DNA of 63,363 bases, filler included, from Choristocarpus tenellus KU-1152 (taxonomy: Eukaryota; Protista; Phaeophyceae), in assembly GCA_964200185.2 (NCBI GenBank). It is 9 parts of 9 records of this genome, joined end to end, with 100 filler letters (N's around TTAATTAATTAA, not from the genome) between each part and the next. Parts side by side here need not be neighbours in the genome. Positions count along the whole stretch, not along the records: positions 51,362 to 60,387 come from CAXNAD020004071.1; 8 more parts are not named here. One strand, 5' to 3'. Made by a program: the position numbers and the translations under genes. Positions 10,214-60,387 of this stretch are shown here, piece after piece; position 1 is the stretch's first letter; every line of letters begins with the position of its first letter. The notes under the pieces are model-generated. The model worked only from the letters and a program-made list of their open reading frames with translations. It was not told the origin of the DNA and did no database searches.

Positions 10214-13200
10214 TTTCCTCTCCCTCTTAAGCCCTCCTCAGCAAAGTCGCCTAAATAAGTTCTGATCACTATAGTCCTGTCTTCCGTCTATTCTGATGGG
10301 ATGTTGTTCCCAAACATCACATGAGAACAAGTATTGGAAGGCGTTAATTCGGATGTTGTAGAAGGCGTTGTATGGTTATGTGTTGGTGACAAGGAAGGTG
10401 TTGAGGGGGAAGGTGTCCAAGTAGCTGGTTCCAGGAGAATATACGAATCCTATGGTACTTCTAAGACATCTGGGGAGGATTGGGGAGTGCGGTTGGAAGG
10501 CATCAAACAGATTACGACTGAACTGTCCCTCGATAGCTGGAGGGTCCAGTTGGAGAAGTGCACCACCTGGAAGCTTATACCCAAGTGCACAAGGAAGGTC
10601 ACTCCCACGAGTTTGGCATCAGTGGAGGTTTTTGTCATCTGGTCCACCAGATTCTTCTGGACGTCATGAAGAAGGCGTTGGTGGTGAGTCTCGTGCATCA
10701 GTTGGAGGAGAATGTGATTGGGTTAAGATCTTCCTATGTCAGTGTCCTAGTTGTGCCCCTTACGTTGAGTACCCCTGGGTTCATTCATGCGAACTTGGAA
10801 CAAGGATACGCCTAGCAGTAAAAAAATTCGATTGTCTAGGGCAGAGGTGAAGTAGAAAGCTGAGATGTCTCCGTGTCACACCATTGAACTCAGGACCTCT
10901 TCGTCCGTTCTATGTTCTATGTGCATCCCAGAGATGGGGGGGTCGAACTCAAAAAGGTCAGCGCTGAAGATCGAAATGCAAGGAGCAAAGGAAACTGAGC
11001 AAGGAAGCCAGTTCAGAGGTTCTAATCTCAAGAAAGAAGAGAAAGATCTCGACAAAGAGGAGAACAATGCGTCATGGGAATACGATGCACCCTCGGAGTA
11101 TACATTCGTTGATCGCGAGGACACGCCACCCTCACCGATCCTTGACGAGTACGAGCGAACGCGTGACCCCCAAATGTTGGAAGATCTGATGAAAATGGCA
11201 CGTGATAGCCTCCCGCCCCGTGCTGGTCCTAGACGCAACAACCATAAACGACGGGAGCACCAGCGTTTCCGAGCCATTCGGGTGAGAGAACTGTCAAAGT
11301 GGGTCAACCCGAAAAAAATATCTTGAAGAGACATGGGGGGATGAATCACTTATCTACTGCAAGGCTTTGAATGTGAATATTACTTGCTTGGACTTGGCAT
11401 GATGAATACAAGTATCTCTGAACTTTGGAAGTGTCACTGAATAATTGACTCCCCAAGAATCGTTGTCCCCCTGTTCGCCAACCTTTTCACTTGGGTGACC
11501 CACAGAACATCAAGTATAAGGAAAAGGAGCAGCGACAGGCTGCATATGCAAGGAAGCTTCTCAAACGTAAAGAGAGGAAGGCACGAGACTTTGCTATGTT
11601 TGCAGAGTGGCGCCAAGGATCCGAAGACCAGCAAGACACTACTTGATTGTGTTTAAGCGCGTGACAATCAAAATAGTTAATGCAGAGGAGGCATACATGC
11701 ATTTGTGTGACCTTCAACCTTGCATGTATAGAGGTATTCCTATCGAATTATGAGTCAATTCCACTTGTATCAAATGTTTCACGATGCATTATTTGGTTAC
11801 AAGAAAAGATGTACATGGTTTATTCCACATCCCAGATCGCAGGAATTCCATGTGTTTTTTCATCCCTCCTCGATTCATTGAAGAAACGACTAAGGACTTC
11901 CAGAGCTTAGGATGTCATCTGCATCTGGTCTTCTTGCACATTTCAAAGAATGTAACATGTGAAACAATTACTGATTTTGAATATATAATAGGTGTGCAGC
12001 CCATGCCATTCAACCTCACATCACTTCAGTCCACTTTACTGCATCCTGGACACTCCTTGTCTCATGATAAAACTACCTTCCCCAAACCCCGGTCTTTGCT
12101 AGGCCCCTGCCTCTCTGAGGTAAGTTGAGCTGAGGGTGGCTGCAACTGTTCTTCTTGTCACAACCACCTTAAGTTCTGGCATGCCCTTACTTTGTCTGAT
12201 CTCATTAATTTTTTCTGCTCCCTGTATCGTTTCTGAGGATACCACAATAGCATCATAGTCCAGCTCGACAACAGGTGGTCCAAATGGATCTAAGATCTCT
12301 TCTACACGTGTCTGAAGACCAGGGTCTATGCTCCTGCAGTGTTTTCCATTGTAAGATGAGTGAGCAAGGGTGAAGAAAAAATAAAGAGTTACTGTGATAC
12401 AGAGAACATGCAGAGAGACTTTTGGAGTAAGTACTGAGGCTATGGCACTTTCTCAATCTTAGTCTACATTTGGCTATGGCTGCTATGTCAATATGGGGTG
12501 CATTGTGGCACACAAGATATAAAACGAGTGATACAACTCTTTACAAAAGGAGGGATTGATGAAAAGTGACCTGGATCATGAACAACAATTTCACACCTCA
12601 AAAAATCTTGCACTCTGCTCATTCGTTCAGGGAGGCTGCCCAAAAGATGGTAGTTTGACTTGCTCTTCAGCATTTTGTCACTTGTCACCCCAACTGTAAG
12701 TACATTCTGGCACAGACTGGGATGAGGGAACAGAGGGATTCAATGAAGGGAAGGAATGGAAATAGATGCAACTCCTGCAGAGGAATAAATCTATGTGGGG
12801 ACAAAATGCAGATGAACACCATAATGGAGGCAGACAGGAGAGGAATGGATAAGTCTTTGGTCACACCTTGCAGCAACTGTAAGTAGTTTCTTGTGCCCAC
12901 CATGCAATCTGTCGAATGTTCCCCCACAGGCCACCTGTCGCCAGAAGGATAAGGTAGTTGACAAGAGGAGGACCAATTATCCCCTGTTCCTGGTCTTGCA
13001 CTCACTGGGCATACATGTATGGACGAAAATTGAACCCAGTAAATGACATATTCAACTTGATCCTTGCTCAAGCAATAAATTGTTTCACCCAAACATACGA
13101 TATTCTCCTAATGCACACCATCTGCAGTATGCACTTAACATATGATAGCTTCTAGTGTACTTGCTTCACACACTTATGAAATTAAAACAAATGACCTTCT

Positions 13201-51361: not shown

Positions 51362-52085
51362 GGAAAAGAGCAAAACAACAGGGGGGGGGGGCTCTGCACC
51401 CTGGGAGTTGTTTAGATGTATGGTCCATCAAATTTTGTTTTCCCTTACGCACGAGCTTTCTTAAGTATGTTGTCACAAGTATATAACATCTTAGAATATG
51501 TTTTTGGTCCCTCTGGAGAATGTAAATACTGCCACTAAGAATGTTATTGTTCCTTTCTGATTCAATTCATTCCATACAGCACTGTGCCTCAAGGAATGTG
51601 TACCTATTTCCTAATTCAAATCGATTAAAAATAGCATGTACTTGAGGGAGTGTTGTGCGGTAGGATGGCACTGAAAAATATTGACTTTTGAAATTCAAAT
51701 TGAAATAAAACTACAACTACAAGACTGTCCAAGTGTTGTTTCTACAGTATCTTCAAGATATTTTTGGTCTGATATCACAGTGGTACCCTCCCTCGCCCCA
51801 CATAAAATTTTGAGGTACCCATTTTTGCAACATGTGAGTGCTGTAACTTTCTTGACACGAACCAATCCACCATATAAAACAGAAAAATACGTTCATACCC
51901 ACCAATATATGCCTACTCCTCTATTTCCAAGCTCCACTGTGTGCAACTCTTCATAATTTTGTGTCCTAAAATACATGCCTGTCCCCTATTAACAAACTCC
52001 ACCATGCGAAGCACTCACTGCCGCTTCTCTGCCACAGTACCATTGCTTAATTTTTTAATTCACTTCTTCTCCTCTTCAACAAAAG

Positions 52086-53152
52086 GTACTGTGGAGCATG
52101 CTATGCCCATGGCAGACCTTTCCCAGCCAGTTGCATTGGGATATGTAGCGTGCTGGGATGTTATTGTAGATGCGATTGAGTTGGTAGAGGCACTTAAGGA
52201 GGAGGCAGACTGGGCAGAACCAGAGGTACCATCCCACCACGATGAGGTGGGATCATTGCGGGATCTGGGTGAACTCCTTGCATACTTCTTCTCGAACGTG
52301 AGTGGGTACATATATATATATTATTATTTTTCCTTTTTGTTCGGTTGTGCCTGTACAGTGAAAAAAGAAAATCTAGTGCTTGCTTCCCTGCTCCTTTGCC
52401 TTTTGTGTTGTTTGCATTATCTTTTGTCTTTATTGTTAGGTCTATTTTTTATCTGTATTGTCTCTGTGCAACTCATTTCATGTGTGCGTGCTGAGTTTTG
52501 TTTGTTTTGGACGGGTGTATGTATGAGTGACTGACAAAAAATACTCTGTATGAAGCGCAACCGGTTGTATTAATATTGGGACTTCACAAGCGATTTTTGT
52601 GTGTTGAAAATGTGTAGTATAGTATAGTGAACCAATATATATTTTTGCAAACCTTGAAACGATTCGATATGCTTGATTGGATGTAAGTATGCACACTTGT
52701 GAACACTGAGTTCTGTGAGGAAGTTGAATAATTAAAGCAAATCATGCAGCGTTGGTACCAGACGGGCAAGAACATGTTTGACTGATTGAAAGGTTTTGAT
52801 TGCGGTTCGGACTGTTCTTTTGAGAGCATGCAACCACCACTATTATTATTTAACAAAATTGAAAGGAGTACATTTGCCTGTAATCTGGGGTTGTATTGCG
52901 ATTGATTGTTGTCTTGTTGTCTTTTTTTCTCAACATTTTGACAGAAACAACCCATTTTCCACTTTATAATATGTAAATGAAAGAAAACAAAATTATTCAG
53001 AAACTACACTTTTTTTTTTGTTGAGAAGTATGCACCTGTTTTGTATTTTGTAACAGTGTAGTACACCTTTTGTTTAAGAAATTGTGAATCATATCCTCCT
53101 CGTTGTGACTATGAACAGATTCCAACTGTTGCTCTTTTCTGGACTGGGATCC

Positions 53153-53189
<37 letters not shown>

Positions 53190-56100
53190 ACCCCCTGAAT
53201 AAAACAAAAAACTGAAGGGTGCCGCTGCGGAGCGGTATGTTTCACACAAAGAAGTGTTCCGGAGGGTGGTAAGCACTGCTTTGTCCCTTCCAAGCCACTC
53301 CAAGTCGGTCGGAGGTAATGCTGCCCTCATGGCCCTTCGTATGGCAAAGGTGAGCTATCATAGCCCAAGGGTTTTACTTGAACAAACCCACATATTAATA
53401 ATACCCCTGCACTCCTGACCCTGCCCGGAGGGACAATCCTAACTCTAGCCAGGAGCGCACTCTACCTTATCCCCTGCCCAAACCCTAGCCTGAAACACAA
53501 CCCTAACCCTAAACCCTAAGCCCTGTTTTTATCTCCTTTCCTAACCTCGGCCTGAAATACAACTCTTACCTTGAACCCTAGCCCTATTCTTGTCTCCTTC
53601 CCTTATCCTAACCTAAACCACAATCCTAACCATAAACCTTGACACTCTTTTTGTCCCCTGCCCTATCCCCAGTCTGAAACACAGCCCTGACCGTAAAGCC
53701 TAACCATACTTTTATCCCCTTCCCTAACCCTAGCCTGGGGCAAAGTCCTAGCCATAAACTCCAAACCCTATTTTTATCCCCTACCCTGACCCCAGTCTTA
53801 AACACAACCCTATTGCTATTTTTTCCACCAGTCCTAACCCTAACCCCGCTGACCATGGTTTTGTCTCTGCTCATATTGAAAAATCCTAATCCTAACCTTG
53901 TCCTTTGGTTCTGACCTTGCACCAAACATAATCCTACACCTTTCCCCCATCATATTCACTAGATGCATGCATACTAACTTGAATTAATGATGATTATGTG
54001 TTGCTCTATTGGTCAAAGGGATGAAATGTTGAGGCTGTTTGTGGGGTATATTGTAGTAGGGTGTTGTGTTATCCCTGACTCCTCAATGTGGTAAGCTCTA
54101 TGGATGCAATTTCAAATTCTGTATCAAAACAAAACTCGACAATTCACTTTTGTTGTCGGGTGTCTTGAGTTTCATTAGAAATATATGTCGGAAGGTAAAC
54201 TATTTTAGCTTCTTTTCTGCGATTGATATCTTGTCCCACAAATGCCTATTGCACTATTCTTCTTGAGTGCTAAGGTACTGAGCTATTTTAAGAGATGTAT
54301 ATGTTTTTTCAAGGCTGAGGTGACCTCAAAAAACCATTTCAATTTAGAACATACATCTGGAAATATTTAAAATACAATTAGAAGAACACTCTCACGATCC
54401 AGAGTGTACCATATATATTTTTTCTACATTTCCTGGAGAACCTGGCAATGTTGATGATGTTGATGATGCCCTATTATCCCAACTATTATTGAGTACTACT
54501 AGTGCGTTGTGCTTTGGTTTTCTTGGCTTCCCTTCTGAGCAGCAATTTTATCTTAGTTTAATTGATTTTATAGTTAAGTATATCTTTTGTGTATTTTTTA
54601 TTTTCTCAAGTACTGTGTTATTTCTTTTCCTCAATTGTTTGGCCACATGTAATAAAAATAAGACAAAGGTAATAACGAGAACAATAATAGCAATAGTAAC
54701 TTCAGTTCTAGCAACAGGTGCAGCACGACTACCTTTTTGTGCTATTGGGGTTGATCGTCAACCAACAGGGGCACGTGAACCCTCTGCTGCTCTTCCCTTC
54801 CTCCCTCCCCCACTCCTCCTTCCTTGTGATGTGTCACAACTTATTTTGAGAAGGCTGGTGCAACAGATATCACTCTGGGAATACCTGGGACAGAGGCGTT
54901 GAGCAATGAGTTCACTTCCCATGGTATTAATGTTTACCAGCCATCGAAAGGAGCGGGGGTCAACGGAGACCTGGTGGGTGGGGACTACACATTTTTTACG
55001 ATACATATATTTTTCTTATTTTTATAATTTGTATTATTATTATTCTTATTATTCTTATCTGAAAACTGGTTTTCAGACAAAAATAGCAGACATTTCCAGT
55101 GTCCGTTTTATGCTCCTTGTTGCTTCTCATTGTCGTAAAATCTGTCGACAGTATAGTAATTGTATGTGTAGGATATATTTTTTTTCTAGAAGAAAGACAA
55201 TATGCCAGAATTGTATCACAATGGCAGAGGGATAATGTGCTTGGTTGTGGTGTACTATGTACAAGATACGGTTGAAAAATCCTGATAGTTGGTTGTAGAC
55301 TATAGGTGATACAGGTGTAACACTATGAACAATGTGACCTCCACTTCAAGTAGTCCATTGCTATTCATTTTTGGAGGACGAGGGTGGGGGGGGGAGGTAT
55401 AGACCATTATTGCATCGGAAAGGATAGGTGGGTTGTGGTGTTTATAGTATATATCACAAGAGAGAAGAGATGAACTGGCTGCTAAAAAGAAGCTTACCCA
55501 CCCCCCCTTTTTTTATATCTTTTGTTCTTCACTTGTGTAGGATTAGGGTTCAGTTTAGGGTTATTATGTCATCACCACTGCTTTTAACTTGATCTAATGC
55601 TCTGTCATTTTTCTTCCCCCCTCTCCCCCCCCTGACTAACCGAAGGAGGATGATGTTCACCTCATCCTGGAATGGAAAACAGGGGAGGTTTGGGGGGAGC
55701 TGGTGTCTCCTCGTGCCAATCGCCTTGCTCTACATAGTGACGTAGCCAACCCAGAGCTGTGGGCTGTGGAGCCCCTGATGGATAAGGTGAGGTCACCTCC
55801 TTCCTCCCCCCCTTCTAAGTTATCACCCCCTATCCCTGTTGTGGAGGGGTGTGGAGTCGAAAAGTGGCAATCTTGTGGGAAGGAAGGCTAAGTGTGCAAA
55901 ATCGGTGTGAATCTACCATGATACCTTGCATGAGTTCTTAGCAGTAAATTTGTGAAGTGTGTGTATGTGTGTGTATTCTGAGTAGTGGTCAGGTTATGCT
56001 TTTTTTTAACTTTTGGAACCACTACAAGACGCCTTCCAATGATTTGTGTTATATATGTCTTTCTTTGTGAGGCTTTACCCTCTGCCCGTTGCTTCTCTTT

Positions 56101-57554
56101 CAATATTTCACCCTCTGCCCATCACCTGTCCCCCCGACCCCTGCCCCCCAACCCCCAACCCCACACCTCTCTGTTGACAGCTTGCAGGGTCTCCCCCTTC
56201 CATTCTTGTAGTAGGTGGACTTCAGTTGATGCAGAGCTACAGAGGGTGGGATGGAGGTGCATGGATTAAGGCAGCAGAGGGAGATAATGGGGATGATGGA
56301 AAAGATCCTGGACAGCACCCAGCCCATGTCCGTCTCAAGGAACTTGAGGTATGAACAGGAACAACTTTTTGGTTGGTTGAGAAACAGAGGAAAGGGTTAT
56401 GTTGGGGGGGACTAGATGTTTATGTGGCCTGGTGGTGACATGGCTCCTTGTATGTTACCCAGAACTGTGACACTCATTCAAGAAATCAAGCCTTGGTTGC
56501 ACTGGTTTTTGACATTTTGGGAACGCGGTGTTGATTTTTCCAGTTTTGACTCTAATCCAGATAAGAAGTATCACTTGTCATCAATGCATTTAATTTGTGG
56601 CCTTTGTTCACGTTAATGAATCGCCTTTTCTGTGGTGGATGTGGGTAAGAATGCTCATGGATATTAATTGATAACCAACTGGTGTCGATGAATTATTAGT
56701 GGTAATATCTTGTTGACATAAGGTGCATTTAAGGCATTATTGTTCCTTTCTCTTGGTGCACACTGAACACCTTGACTGCTGTTGTACAATAGTATTAAGT
56801 GCCATCGTTATACAACAGTATATCGCGAGACATACAAATTGTCACAAACATTTTGTAATTCAAAGTGTGAATTGTCCTCTCCATCCCTTGCCCTCCCCTT
56901 CCCCCTCCCCACATTTTGACCTTCTATGGCCTCAAGGAGGAGAATCAATCCCTCTAGTGCTGTTCAAGAATGAGTTTAGATCTACTGATCGCCTGTACCA
57001 AACCCTACCCCTCCTATTATGCCACCTCCCCCCTCCCTTTCCCCCCATCTGATGTCGACTGTTAGGAACGTATATTGCCTCTGATGGAGGAAACTGAGAA
57101 CAGTTCTAGATCTCCCACCCGGATTCACTTTGAGTTTGCCTCTGTGTCCGAGGTGGGCTTTGTGAAGGAGTTGGATGAGAAGGTCCTCAGCCTGTCTGCA
57201 TCTCTTGGTGAGCCCCAATTTTGGTTCCTCATTCTTCTTCGTGTCATTAATACTCTTATTTTATATTTATGGTTCTATTCTTTTTTCTAATTTTTACTTT
57301 AAATATCTGTTTATCAATAGCTTTTATTCTTCTTTAAGCAAGCAACCATCCTGAATTGCGAGACAGACCCTCACCACCTTCTCTCATCTCCTCTTCTACC
57401 TAATTCATGTTTTCCTAGACATCATGCTGACTGTGTAACCCTGCCTCCCCTCGCTATTAAAACAACTCGCGTAATCATCCTATTAGGTGGGAATGAGCAA
57501 GAGCTGGGTACCCTATACGAATACCTATTGAATGGAAAAGTATCCCATGTTCAG
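52086..57554 (+). CDS. ADPGK: ADP-dependent glucokinase, seven internal exons (52086-52297, 53218-53349, 54854-54973, 55646-55786, 56181-56348, 57066-57207, 57487-57554); both ends missing
   Basis: VALGYVACWDVIV, FFSN|GAAAERYVS, VGGNAALMA, DDVHLILEWKTGEVWGELVSPRANR, LVVGGLQLM, IHFEFAS, SLGGNEQEL follow eukaryotic ADPGK motifs in order. All six introns are GT-AG and phase-consistent. Confidence 0.92.
53468..53900. repeat. ~61-bp degenerate satellite built from CCCTAA-like hexamers, about 6-7 units
   Basis: TT(A/G)TC(C/T)CCT...(G/T)AAACACAACCCT... recurs at about 53468, 53530, 53590, 53651, 53712 and 53773. Confidence 0.7.
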
Positions 57555-58306
57555 GTGACTGGCTGTGTTTTATTTTTTGTGCTATGTGACCCCGGTGGTG
57601 TGACTGTCGTATGATACTATTTCCGATGTATTTACTATAACAGTGTAGTGTTGAAAATGTGCATCTATTTCAATAGGTGGAGATATATTTGAACTGGTCG
57701 TTTAAATGGGATTTTGTTTTTGTTGGTTTACGATATGATGAAGGAAACTGTTTACAGTTCGTGTTGAATTCCTTGTACCATATGAGGAAAATTCGCTAGG
57801 TTCATACCACTCCACAGACTGTTGGTTTCTTAGTTGGTGGACAGGAGGAAATTTCCAGAACATTTGCTAGAAGAGGGCCCTAATTTAGATGCGACTATCA
57901 ATTGTTGGGTTACAGCATTGTATTTGGTGCTCCATCTAATGTGGCGATGGGATGATGATAAGTAGATACGAACTTTTGCCTCCAGCAGGGATCAATAGGT
58001 GTCCAAAAGTGGGGTCCTACTGGTTCACTGTTGAAAGCATACATGCACTTAAGTCCTACCTATTGTTTCGAGTATAATCGTTCCTTGATGCGTAAAATTT
58101 ATCTATGCATGGATCTTGGGATTTTTGAATTCCAACACCATTCTGAACAAGTGGTTAGTTCCTTCGGCATCACATATATATGATTCTTATTTTGATGATT
58201 CTTAGACTTTCTAGAATGTAATTATAGTATTCTCCAGCAAGAGTTGCTGTGTGGGATAGTGACCATTGGAAAATGATGTGTACGAAGTCCCACAACGAAT
58301 CGCGTC

Positions 58307-59080
58307 CTCCACCCTTCCTTGCAAAGTGAGGAGTTACATAGATGCCTCTATGGGAGCTTGACTTTCCTCTCCTCCCCAGTGCTGGGGTGGACGCATTGTG
58401 GGAATTGGAATCTTCATTCTGGTTCCTTGATAGGTCAGAATGTAGTTTCCAATTCTCTTATTCTGTCTAACTCAGCACTGGGTAGGTGAGGAAAATGAGT
58501 CTACGTTAAGAACATCTATTTGCCTCATCTATGGGAGCTTGACTTTCTTCTCCTCCCCAGTGCTGAGGTGGACGCATTGTGTAGAATTGGAATCTACATT
58601 CTGGTTCCTCGATAGGGCATAATGTAGGTTCCAGTTCTCTTATTCTGTCCAACTCAGTACTGGGTAGGGGATAGGAATGAGGCTCCCACAAGAACATGTA
58701 TACGACTCATCTATGGTAGCTTGACTTTCCTCTCCTCCCCAGTGCTGAGGTAGGCGCATTGTGGGATTTGCAATCTACATTCTGGTTTGTCAATAGGACA
58801 GAATGTAGGTTCCATTTCTCTTATTTTTTCCACCTCAGCACTGGGTAGGTGAGGAAAATGAAGCTTCCACATGACTCATCTATGGGAACTCCATTTTCCT
58901 GTCCTCCCCAGTGCTGAGGTGGAGACATTGTAGGAATTGGAAGCTATGTTTTGATCCCTCGATAGGGCAGAATGTAGGTTTCAGTTATCTTGTTCTGTCC
59001 ACCTCAGCCCTGGGTAGTTGAGGAAAATGAGACTCTCACAGATACATCTATGTAACTCCTCTCTGCAATGAAGGCCGGAG
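58307..59080 (+). ncRNA. Candidate intronic polycistronic hairpin-RNA/miRNA locus: four tandem foldbacks inside an outer stem
   Basis: Units start (CTATGG) at 58348, 58529, 58711 and 58880, each an imperfect palindrome. 58307-58344 pairs with 59045-59080. The repeat and hairpin structure is clear; the ncRNA function is inferred. Confidence 0.5.
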
Positions 59081-60387
59081 AGTATAGCTTGTGCGGTGAA
59101 TTAGTGTTATTTATTTTTCTTCTGGTAGTGTGGTGCTGTTTTTACCACAATAATTCAGGCTTATGGCTAGCTGAGTTGTTTTTTTAAATTTAAAACCCAG
59201 TGAAATTTGGCACACCGATTCTTAGGTTTTCAAATATTTTGTGGCATGACACAATTCAGAAGGGTTACATATATTGGCTGTGGTCTCGCTTTGCATCTGA
59301 AATTGTGTTTTGAATAGTGTTTAATCGTCATGGTTAGGGTAAATTTAGGATCTGTGTAATGCTTCAAATCTTTTTTTTTTGAACATGTAATCTGAAAGAA
59401 AGTGTTGCTATGGTTTGTAATGGTTATGTTTTTCTAGGCACAGATTGTCTCATTTTGTGGGTCTATATGATAATAGTATCGCAGTAGTCTGGTGTGTGGC
59501 ACGCGCACTGAAACATCATGTCACGAGGAAATACACACCTTCATCAGCCCTATACAACCCTTCAATGCAGTTCCCTTTGCTTTGCCTTGTGTGTGCTGTG
59601 ACCCCTGACTTACCTGCCTCTCTTTCTGAGTCTCCTGATCGATCGACTGACTGCAAATGTGACATCCTATGCAGAGTGGATCTCACCATTCGTGTTGTAT
59701 GTAGTGTTTGAGGTACAAACCATTTTTTTTTTCGGGCTACAGGGACCCCACTCCCTCACTCCCCCACACCACTTGTACACACCACAACTGCTGCAATACA
59801 TCTACCCTGCCTCCTGATGCTGGACATGTATCTGAATGTCTGATTTGTGTAGCTGCCCCAAACCCTACCAAAATACACATTTGTTTGTATTTTTTGCATC
59901 AAGAATCTAATGTGTACCCTTTAATAATCCCACCCTGACAAAAGGATGTTGCTGACTTATCTTGCTGCTGTGATGGTGTGACCCTCCCCATGTATGCTAT
60001 GGCACCGCCTACTTTTATGTGGTTGATACTGTCTGAAGCCGCACACTCCCCGTGTGGCTGACACTTTGGACAAAATGCGTTTTGTATTTTCCACCCTGCG
60101 GAAGAGGAGGCTGACCCGTCTCCATGTGCATACACTTGCCTTCCAGGCAAGGAACAAGTCTCCATCCTCGTCTTGGTTTGCGCATACACTTGCTCCATCA
60201 TACTGATTTTTTTGTAGTGCTATTACTACTACTGTATGCAAATAGCGAAAAGTCACTTTGAACTTTTTCTTTTTTCCTGTATTTTTATTTTTTGGTTACT
60301 ACACTTCTTTTTCGCGTCACATGTTGGTTTTAGTGTAGTATTAATGTTCTTTTTTTTAAGGTGTGTTGGGGTGTGTGGTGGGGGGTG

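Follow-up and report, generated by a model that had tools for sequence, protein, structure and literature searches.

Four tandem foldback hairpins in an ADPGK intron of the brown alga Choristocarpus tenellus: a candidate cluster of miRNA-like precursors

Descriptions of brown-algal miRNAs are limited to crown-group species (Ectocarpus and Saccharina), in which clustering and birth by duplication are both said to be rare. Known loci are 75% intragenic, nearly all of these being intronic, with 90-94% on the sense strand (PMC4513859, PMC12867755, PMC5381526). The single AGO of Ectocarpus has a preference for 21-mers that begin with U, and in the Phaeoexplorer set the orthogroups of Dicer and AGO extend over 72-73 species. 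Brown-algal miRNAs seldom form clusters (PMC4513859, PMC5381526); in Saccharina the clusters are almost all pairs, and most of them arose by local duplication (PMC5381526).

Here we describe four tandem foldbacks in an intron of the gene for ADP-dependent glucokinase (ADPGK) of Choristocarpus tenellus KU-1152 (assembly GCA_964200185.2). The array shares with the brown-algal miRNA loci a long foldback, an intronic place sense to the host, lineage specificity, local head-to-tail duplication, and U-starting 21-mers, which are candidates in our case (PMC4513859, PMC12867755, PMC5381526). The closest known case is the homologous, head-to-tail Ectocarpus pair Ec-28_002530/Ec-28_002540, whose starts lie 144 bp apart; among the 354 listed Ectocarpus loci, we saw no series of three or more homologous hairpins abutting one another. 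The array differs from all these loci in that an additional closing stem surrounds its four head-to-tail copies. It also resembles the 'weak candidate' or 'transitional' loci of Ectocarpus (PMC4513859), which are palindromic over several hundred base pairs, mostly intragenic, and possible sources of several small RNAs, although its own complexity is a regular tandem amplification of one hairpin.

Comparable layouts occur well outside the brown algae. Drosophila hp-CG4068 (PMC10317233) likewise places tandem hairpin copies on one transcript and changes its copy number fast, yet it belongs to the animal Dcr-2/AGO2 siRNA pathway, forms its own transcription unit of 9-20 copies, and has no homology to the array. 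The rodent Sfmbt2 intron-10 cluster C2MC (PMC3212979) is also a lineage-specific, head-to-tail amplification of a hairpin unit in an intron, in this case with tens of SINE/microsatellite-derived copies, short animal pre-miRNAs, and no enclosing stem. Among transposable elements, the DTC84/pearl-like tandem-repeat MITEs (PMC3879986) have inverted-repeat flanks around core repeats and palindromes near the junctions; in contrast, the array is without their AA target-site duplication and microsatellite module, and its cores are whole foldbacks. Finally, plant precursors of the miR319/miR159 type (10.1101/129684) have a stem of about 80 bp and a guide three 21-nt steps from the loop, as proposed here, but they are unrelated in lineage and sequence, and for the array a processing direction is only inferred. 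Tandem hairpin amplification itself is already known in animals, and the nested four-in-one layout is a variation on a familiar type, not a new system.

The window (the whole stretch of DNA that was analysed, 63,363 nucleotides including filler) contains the array, with its outer arms, at 58307-59080, within a piece of about 9 kb (51,362-60,387, GC 42.2%). In an exon-by-exon Pfam search, exons on both sides of the array match PF04587 (ADPGK), and their coordinates are collected in Table 1. The earlier note on this DNA had taken the array to be probably intronic on the ADPGK strand, judging from the last visible donor and the still missing C-terminus; this now holds firmly, since the GT donor and the next exon (83% identical to a Discosporangium fragment) have both been identified. 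The array accordingly occupies a mid-intron, sense-strand position, and since its hairpin ends do not coincide with the splice sites, it does not qualify as a mirtron.

Table 1. Features of the ADPGK host gene and of the hairpin array (positions along the window)
Feature	Position	Strand	Remarks
ADPGK coding exon	52088-52297	+	Pfam 2-56
ADPGK coding exon	53218-53349	+	Pfam 58-101
ADPGK coding exon, bounds approximate	54854-54973	+	69% to Discosporangium
ADPGK coding exon	55646-55786	+	Pfam 138-181
ADPGK coding exon	56181-56348	+	Comparison with Discosporangium
ADPGK coding exon	57069-57206	+	Pfam 224-257
ADPGK exon on 5' side of host intron	57488-57554	+	Ends ...HVQ
Host intron of the array (ADPGK), GT..AG, 2484 nt	57555-60038	+	Same intron position in Discosporangium L002
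ADPGK exon on 3' side of host intron	60039-60146	+	Starts PHT...; PF04587 positions 283-331, E 5e-7
Left arm, enclosing inverted repeat	58307-58344	+	Perfect core 58328-58344; weak pairing perhaps to ~58286
Unit 1	58347-58528	+	Foldback ~58352-58505; spacer with decayed orphan closing-arm copy 58513-58526
Unit 2	58529-58709	+	Foldback; spacer with decayed orphan closing-arm copy 58695-58708
Unit 3	58710-58878	+	Foldback; spacer has 12-nt deletion
Unit 4	58879-59044	+	Foldback; most diverged copy; runs on into closing arm
Right arm, enclosing inverted repeat	59045-59080	+	Perfect core 59045-59061
Least-variable 5'-arm stretch, unit 1 (predicted guide region)	58363-58390	+	
Counterparts of predicted guide region, units 2-4	58544-58571, 58726-58753, 58895-58922	+	

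Several other features of the gene deserve a brief mention. The exon downstream of the array apparently ends at a non-canonical GC donor (60147-60148), where Discosporangium has GT (L002 2059). C-rich tracts precede most acceptors, likewise in Discosporangium, among them a 42-nt poly-C tract (53154-53195) just 5' of an acceptor. Another ADPGK intron carries a 61-bp tandem repeat (53467-53812; 5.6 copies, 70% matches) with telomere-like CCCTAA motifs.

The position within the intron also bears on a splicing-regulatory role, in which pairing would mask a cryptic (poison) exon. Each unit has a pyrimidine tract with CAG in its 5' arm and a donor-like GTAGGT/GTGAGG in its 3' arm, and acceptor-like AG sites cluster in the array. 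These signals follow directly from the complementarity of the arms, however, the would-be exons contain in-frame stops and lack a Pfam match, and the array is some 0.8-1 kb away from either real splice site, so that we regard such a role as very improbable. Stops and the lack of Pfam matches in the array's open reading frames likewise led us to reject coding repeats or alternative exons.

The array consists of four tandem units of about 180 nt (58347-59044), recovered by TRF with a period of 182 (3.9 copies, 80% matches, score 842) and with pairwise identities of 78-87%. This bears out the tandem array of four foldbacks described in the earlier note; the spacings given at the time (181, 182, and 169) were right in value but not in order, which is 182, 181, and 169. 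On the + strand, each unit is predicted to form a single unbranched hairpin of about 155 nt, made up of an outer stem, a mismatch-rich internal region of 6-8 nt, an inner stem, and a small loop. Minimum free energies (MFE) for units 1-4 are -81.0, -88.6, -81.2, and -76.6 kcal/mol (MFEI about -1.0; z against shuffles -7.7, -8.9, -9.8, and -7.0), and no other 180-nt window of the 9-kb piece folds below -67. On the - strand, the values are -64.2, -67.3, -76.5, and -59.7 kcal/mol (z -4.0 to -9.9), still far below shuffles. Equal stability on the two strands had been named beforehand as a check on the proposal; the + strand folds better in all four units, by 5-21 kcal/mol.

Folding of the whole region gives a less simple picture. 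Its MFE structure pairs arms across copies (-397.7 kcal/mol; the alternative with the closing stem and four local hairpins reaches -385.3), whereas span-limited folding returns one local hairpin per unit; according to these models, both folds form identical 5'-arm/3'-arm duplex sequences. Should cross-copy pairing prevail, the behaviour expected is that of hairpin-siRNA or 'weak candidate' loci, of which Ectocarpus has documented examples. Such an hpRNA-like ('weak/transitional miRNA') palindrome of about 750 nt would be diced into several phased 21-mers with no dominant guide. The predicted MFE fold is itself the cross-copy one, and the predicted folds give a long intramolecular duplex on one strand, as expected of an hpRNA; precedents are found in the 65 Ectocarpus loci of Tarver et al., complex palindromes of several hundred base pairs with multiple small RNAs (67% intragenic, 95% U-first; PMC4513859), and in hp-CG4068, a tandem-hairpin siRNA locus with 9-20 copies (PMC10317233). 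Nonetheless, mismatches recur regularly along the stems and an internal loop interrupts them, which sets them apart from long perfect dsRNA, and homology of the arms to coding sequence was not found. With the evidence on the guide region given below, we consider an hpRNA-like locus unlikely. In the predicted foldbacks, at least 15 nt of candidate 21-mers pair with the opposite arm, as expected of a miRNA locus.

A further inverted repeat, absent from the earlier note, surrounds the whole array (58307-58349/59040-59080). Its alignment score is 52, compared with a maximum of 34 among 2000 shuffles, its core is paired at 17 of 17 positions, and its ends fade without a sharp stop. When the left flank, one unit, and the right flank are folded together, they give a single uninterrupted hairpin of about 290 nt. 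Each spacer between units consists of a decayed copy of the right outer arm's first 13-14 nt and is followed by the start of a unit, which places the duplication breakpoints at a motif common to both sites, CCTCT.TG (58345 and 59058). Since the additional repeat encloses the array, the sequence strongly indicates a single ancestral inverted-repeat foldback of about 290 nt whose interior was duplicated head-to-tail via microhomology. In the simplest history, such a hairpin would first have arisen in the ADPGK intron, and its inner segment of ~182 nt, 13 nt of which belong to the right outer arm, would then have been duplicated at CCTCT.TG by microhomology-guided slippage or unequal exchange, leaving four hairpins inside the original outer stem and orphan copies of the closing arm free to decay.

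The closing stem and these orphan copies have fared differently. Two of the copies differ at 3 and 4 of 14 nt, and part of the third has been deleted; the partnered arm is paired at 17/17, against 7 changes in 28 nt plus a deletion in the partnerless copies (Fisher p 0.005-0.012). The Poisson probability of zero changes in the closing stem at the rate of the units is 0.049. The comparison points to maintenance of the closing stem, be it by selection on RNA structure or by arm-to-arm gene conversion. A preference for G:U is absent from the outer stem (5:7).

Inverted arms around repeated cores also suggest a different origin, namely a relic of a foldback transposon or MITE, or a chance inverted duplication, with its interior amplified: a DNA palindrome decaying under biased mutation, without a selected RNA. 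Inverted arms around up to five core repeats are seen in DTC84/pearl MITEs (PMC3879986), short non-autonomous DNA transposons abound in brown-algal introns, the orthologous intron of Discosporangium is without the array, and the - strand and single-stranded DNA also fold far better than shuffles. However, no target-site duplication was found at any symmetric boundary, where matches are chance ones of 2-4 nt (an old duplication could have decayed); the sole match of 4-5 nt, TGCA/TGCAA, sits inside the inverted repeat, and TGCA was rejected as a target-site duplication on that ground. The fading ends, the missing DTC84-type microsatellite module, cores that are full foldbacks continuous with the outer stem, and a closing stem retained while orphan arm copies decayed all speak against a transposon relic, and a second copy was not found within the 9-kb piece. 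DNA-pattern scans of metagenome and viral contigs for array motifs gave no hit, and BLAST of a stretch of the array against phage sequences gave no match. On balance, and with the substitution pattern that follows, a relic appears somewhat unlikely.

Evidence for selection on the array RNA, as far as the changes among copies can tell, is mixed. Enrichment of G:U pairs on the + strand had been put forward in its favour, and the count itself stands: G:U exceeds A:C by 20:5 when distinct events are counted (p 0.002, even null) and by 36:9 when the DNA is aligned in a strand-symmetric way. Among derived G:U changes, G-C pairs split 6:5, without asymmetry, and A-U pairs 6:0. In the non-hairpin 61-bp repeat of the other ADPGK intron, sense-strand A>G is seen at 12/17 sites vs T>C at 3/12, a bias that the 6:0 ratio matches; the caveat attached to the original claim, that sense-strand mutation can enrich G:U, thus applies. 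With this bias allowed for, the excess is borderline (p 0.045-0.14), and as A>G bias largely explains it, we reject it as proof of RNA-level selection. Equally, the reported 15-mer is indeed unchanged across the four copies, but with a permutation p of 0.08 for a run of this length it is likewise rejected as proof. No compensatory change was found in 59 pairs, pairing is lost in 17 of the 29 derived changes that fall on Watson-Crick pairs, and variability is slightly lower in stems than outside them (p=0.09). Many pair-breaking changes with zero compensation, and a G:U excess accounted for by A>G bias, count in favour of the transposon relic.

To place a candidate guide within the hairpins, we used as a yardstick the putative Ectocarpus miRNA list of PMC12867755 (Dataset S9, span from miRNA to star, n=132). 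We computed from it a period of 42-43 nt in these spans (R=0.73, n=132), with bands at 80-96, 123-135, 163-180, and 208-220 nt (centres ~88, 129, 172, and 213); parts 4-6 of the dataset have the same bands, judged by eye. In plant loop-to-base precursors, miRNA-star distances are uniform (10.1101/129684). The period suggests that Dicer steps by 21 nt from the loop, generally in brown algae, or possibly an annotation artefact; it was not found stated in the portions of PMC12867755 consulted. The same dataset lists two putative miRNA sequences, at 26 and 16 dispersed loci, each of which is for most of its length the reverse complement of the other; they probably represent both arms of a single MITE-like hairpin family.

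The least-variable 5' windows of the array have 2-3 variable columns of 21, vs a mean of 7, with spans of 118-137 that centre on the third Ectocarpus band (123-135, median 129). Taken as an a-priori choice, the guide window has a low variability of p 0.013-0.046 per arm; the best 21-nt window has p 0.28 after scanning. Within the stretch of unit 1, U starts occur at 58363, 58364, 58365, 58368, and 58370, and candidate duplexes from 58363-58370 are bulge-free with 2.5-3 mismatches in 19 bp. A U in all copies, combined with a span within the third band, leaves four starts (58363, 58364, 58365, and 58368). The 21-mer originally proposed (start 58370) is one of 63-79 structurally acceptable 21-mers per unit and has a span of ~120, just outside the band, which starts 58363-58368 fit better. 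We regard the register match as suggestive only, as the bands cover about 30% of positions and come from a distant species; the second register falls on the poorly paired internal region of the hairpin. For an hpRNA-like locus, the 63-79 acceptable 21-mers in each unit count in favour, while the confinement of the lowest variation to one 5'-arm register counts against.

Elsewhere in the locus, a U-starting 21-mer in the right closing arm (59047-59067) would have had a span of ~214 in the single-unit ancestor (a hand estimate), the centre of another Ectocarpus band, and is a possible, predicted second product. Read in antisense, the guide region yields a short peptide-like sequence (HLSTGEE), to which we attach no weight. 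Guide-complementary sites within the 9-kb piece have at best 6-8 mismatches.

In word searches, the sole relatives of the ADPGK protein are two fragments from the brown alga Discosporangium mesarthrocarpum, to which most exons are 69-85% identical, with intron positions common to both. No homologue of the array was found in the two Discosporangium loci (L001 and L002), nor any similarity to it in the complete orthologous intron of about 860 nt in L002 (best E 0.22). As this intron is complete and without the array, the array is lineage-specific, in line with what had been anticipated from other brown-algal miRNAs.

The Discosporangium loci have peculiarities of their own. The orthologous intron carries an unrelated foldback right after the donor (L002 1091-1200; CCCTAG vs TTAGGG telomere-like repeats), and in L001 a branch-point/acceptor segment is present in three tandem copies of ~55-60 nt before an ADPGK exon (11975-12152). 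Annotation splits the ADPGK gene there into two partial proteins, each on its own contig (L001 10001-13215; L002 1002-2058), and exons at L001 13697-16358 are missing from the annotated model.

Taken together, we tentatively favour, at slightly less than an even chance, a lineage-specific polycistronic cluster of long-foldback miRNA-like precursors in the ADPGK intron. The original proposal of a miRNA cluster is borne out in its host, sense-intronic place, foldback length, and lineage specificity, but not in its G:U and 15-mer arguments. The array has the typical features of an emergent miRNA, being a long foldback, intronic, and on the sense strand, with a U-first 21-mer possible; its foldbacks (~155 nt per unit, ~290 nt in the ancestor) compare with brown-algal means of 170 and 183 nt. 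Foldback size, sense-intronic position, the lack of a target-site duplication, and a U-starting least-variable stretch in an Ectocarpus-like register are in favour of a miRNA-like cluster. Against it are the lack of compensatory changes, the borderline G:U excess, the many pair-breaking changes, the cross-copy MFE fold, which may blur processing, the absence from Discosporangium, and the rarity of brown-algal clusters. Rfam gave no match near the gathering score (best mir-3718, 31.8 vs 78 bits), and five array motifs were absent from the Ectocarpus supplements, leaving the array without the homology that defines a published miRNA family.

For expression, dicing, register, and AGO loading, we infer the following course. 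The intron would be transcribed with ADPGK or in the same direction, and Dicer would cut in 21-nt steps starting from the loop. AGO would be loaded with a 21-mer that begins with U and is released from the 5' arm at the third register (start 58363-58368, and its counterparts); with four copies, its dose would be higher and slight variants would be added. A more demanding version, namely a polycistronic pri-miRNA in the earliest-branching brown-algal order with four paralogous foldbacks, a selectively maintained outer stem, and third-register 21-mers from each, is possible but doubtful.

If the array is a transposon relic instead, it is an ordinary repeat. If it is a miRNA-like cluster, it predicts a U-starting 21-mer at 58363-58368 together with three paralogues, and it would be the largest head-to-tail cluster of homologous miRNAs that we found described for brown algae. 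It would capture a snapshot of the birth of a cluster within one hairpin, with microhomology driving the duplication. Long-foldback miRNAs processed in loop-anchored steps of 21 nt would then reach the base of the Phaeophyceae, and the miRNA system of brown algae would extend to the base of the class, in a Discosporangiales-like alga, with duplication at work.
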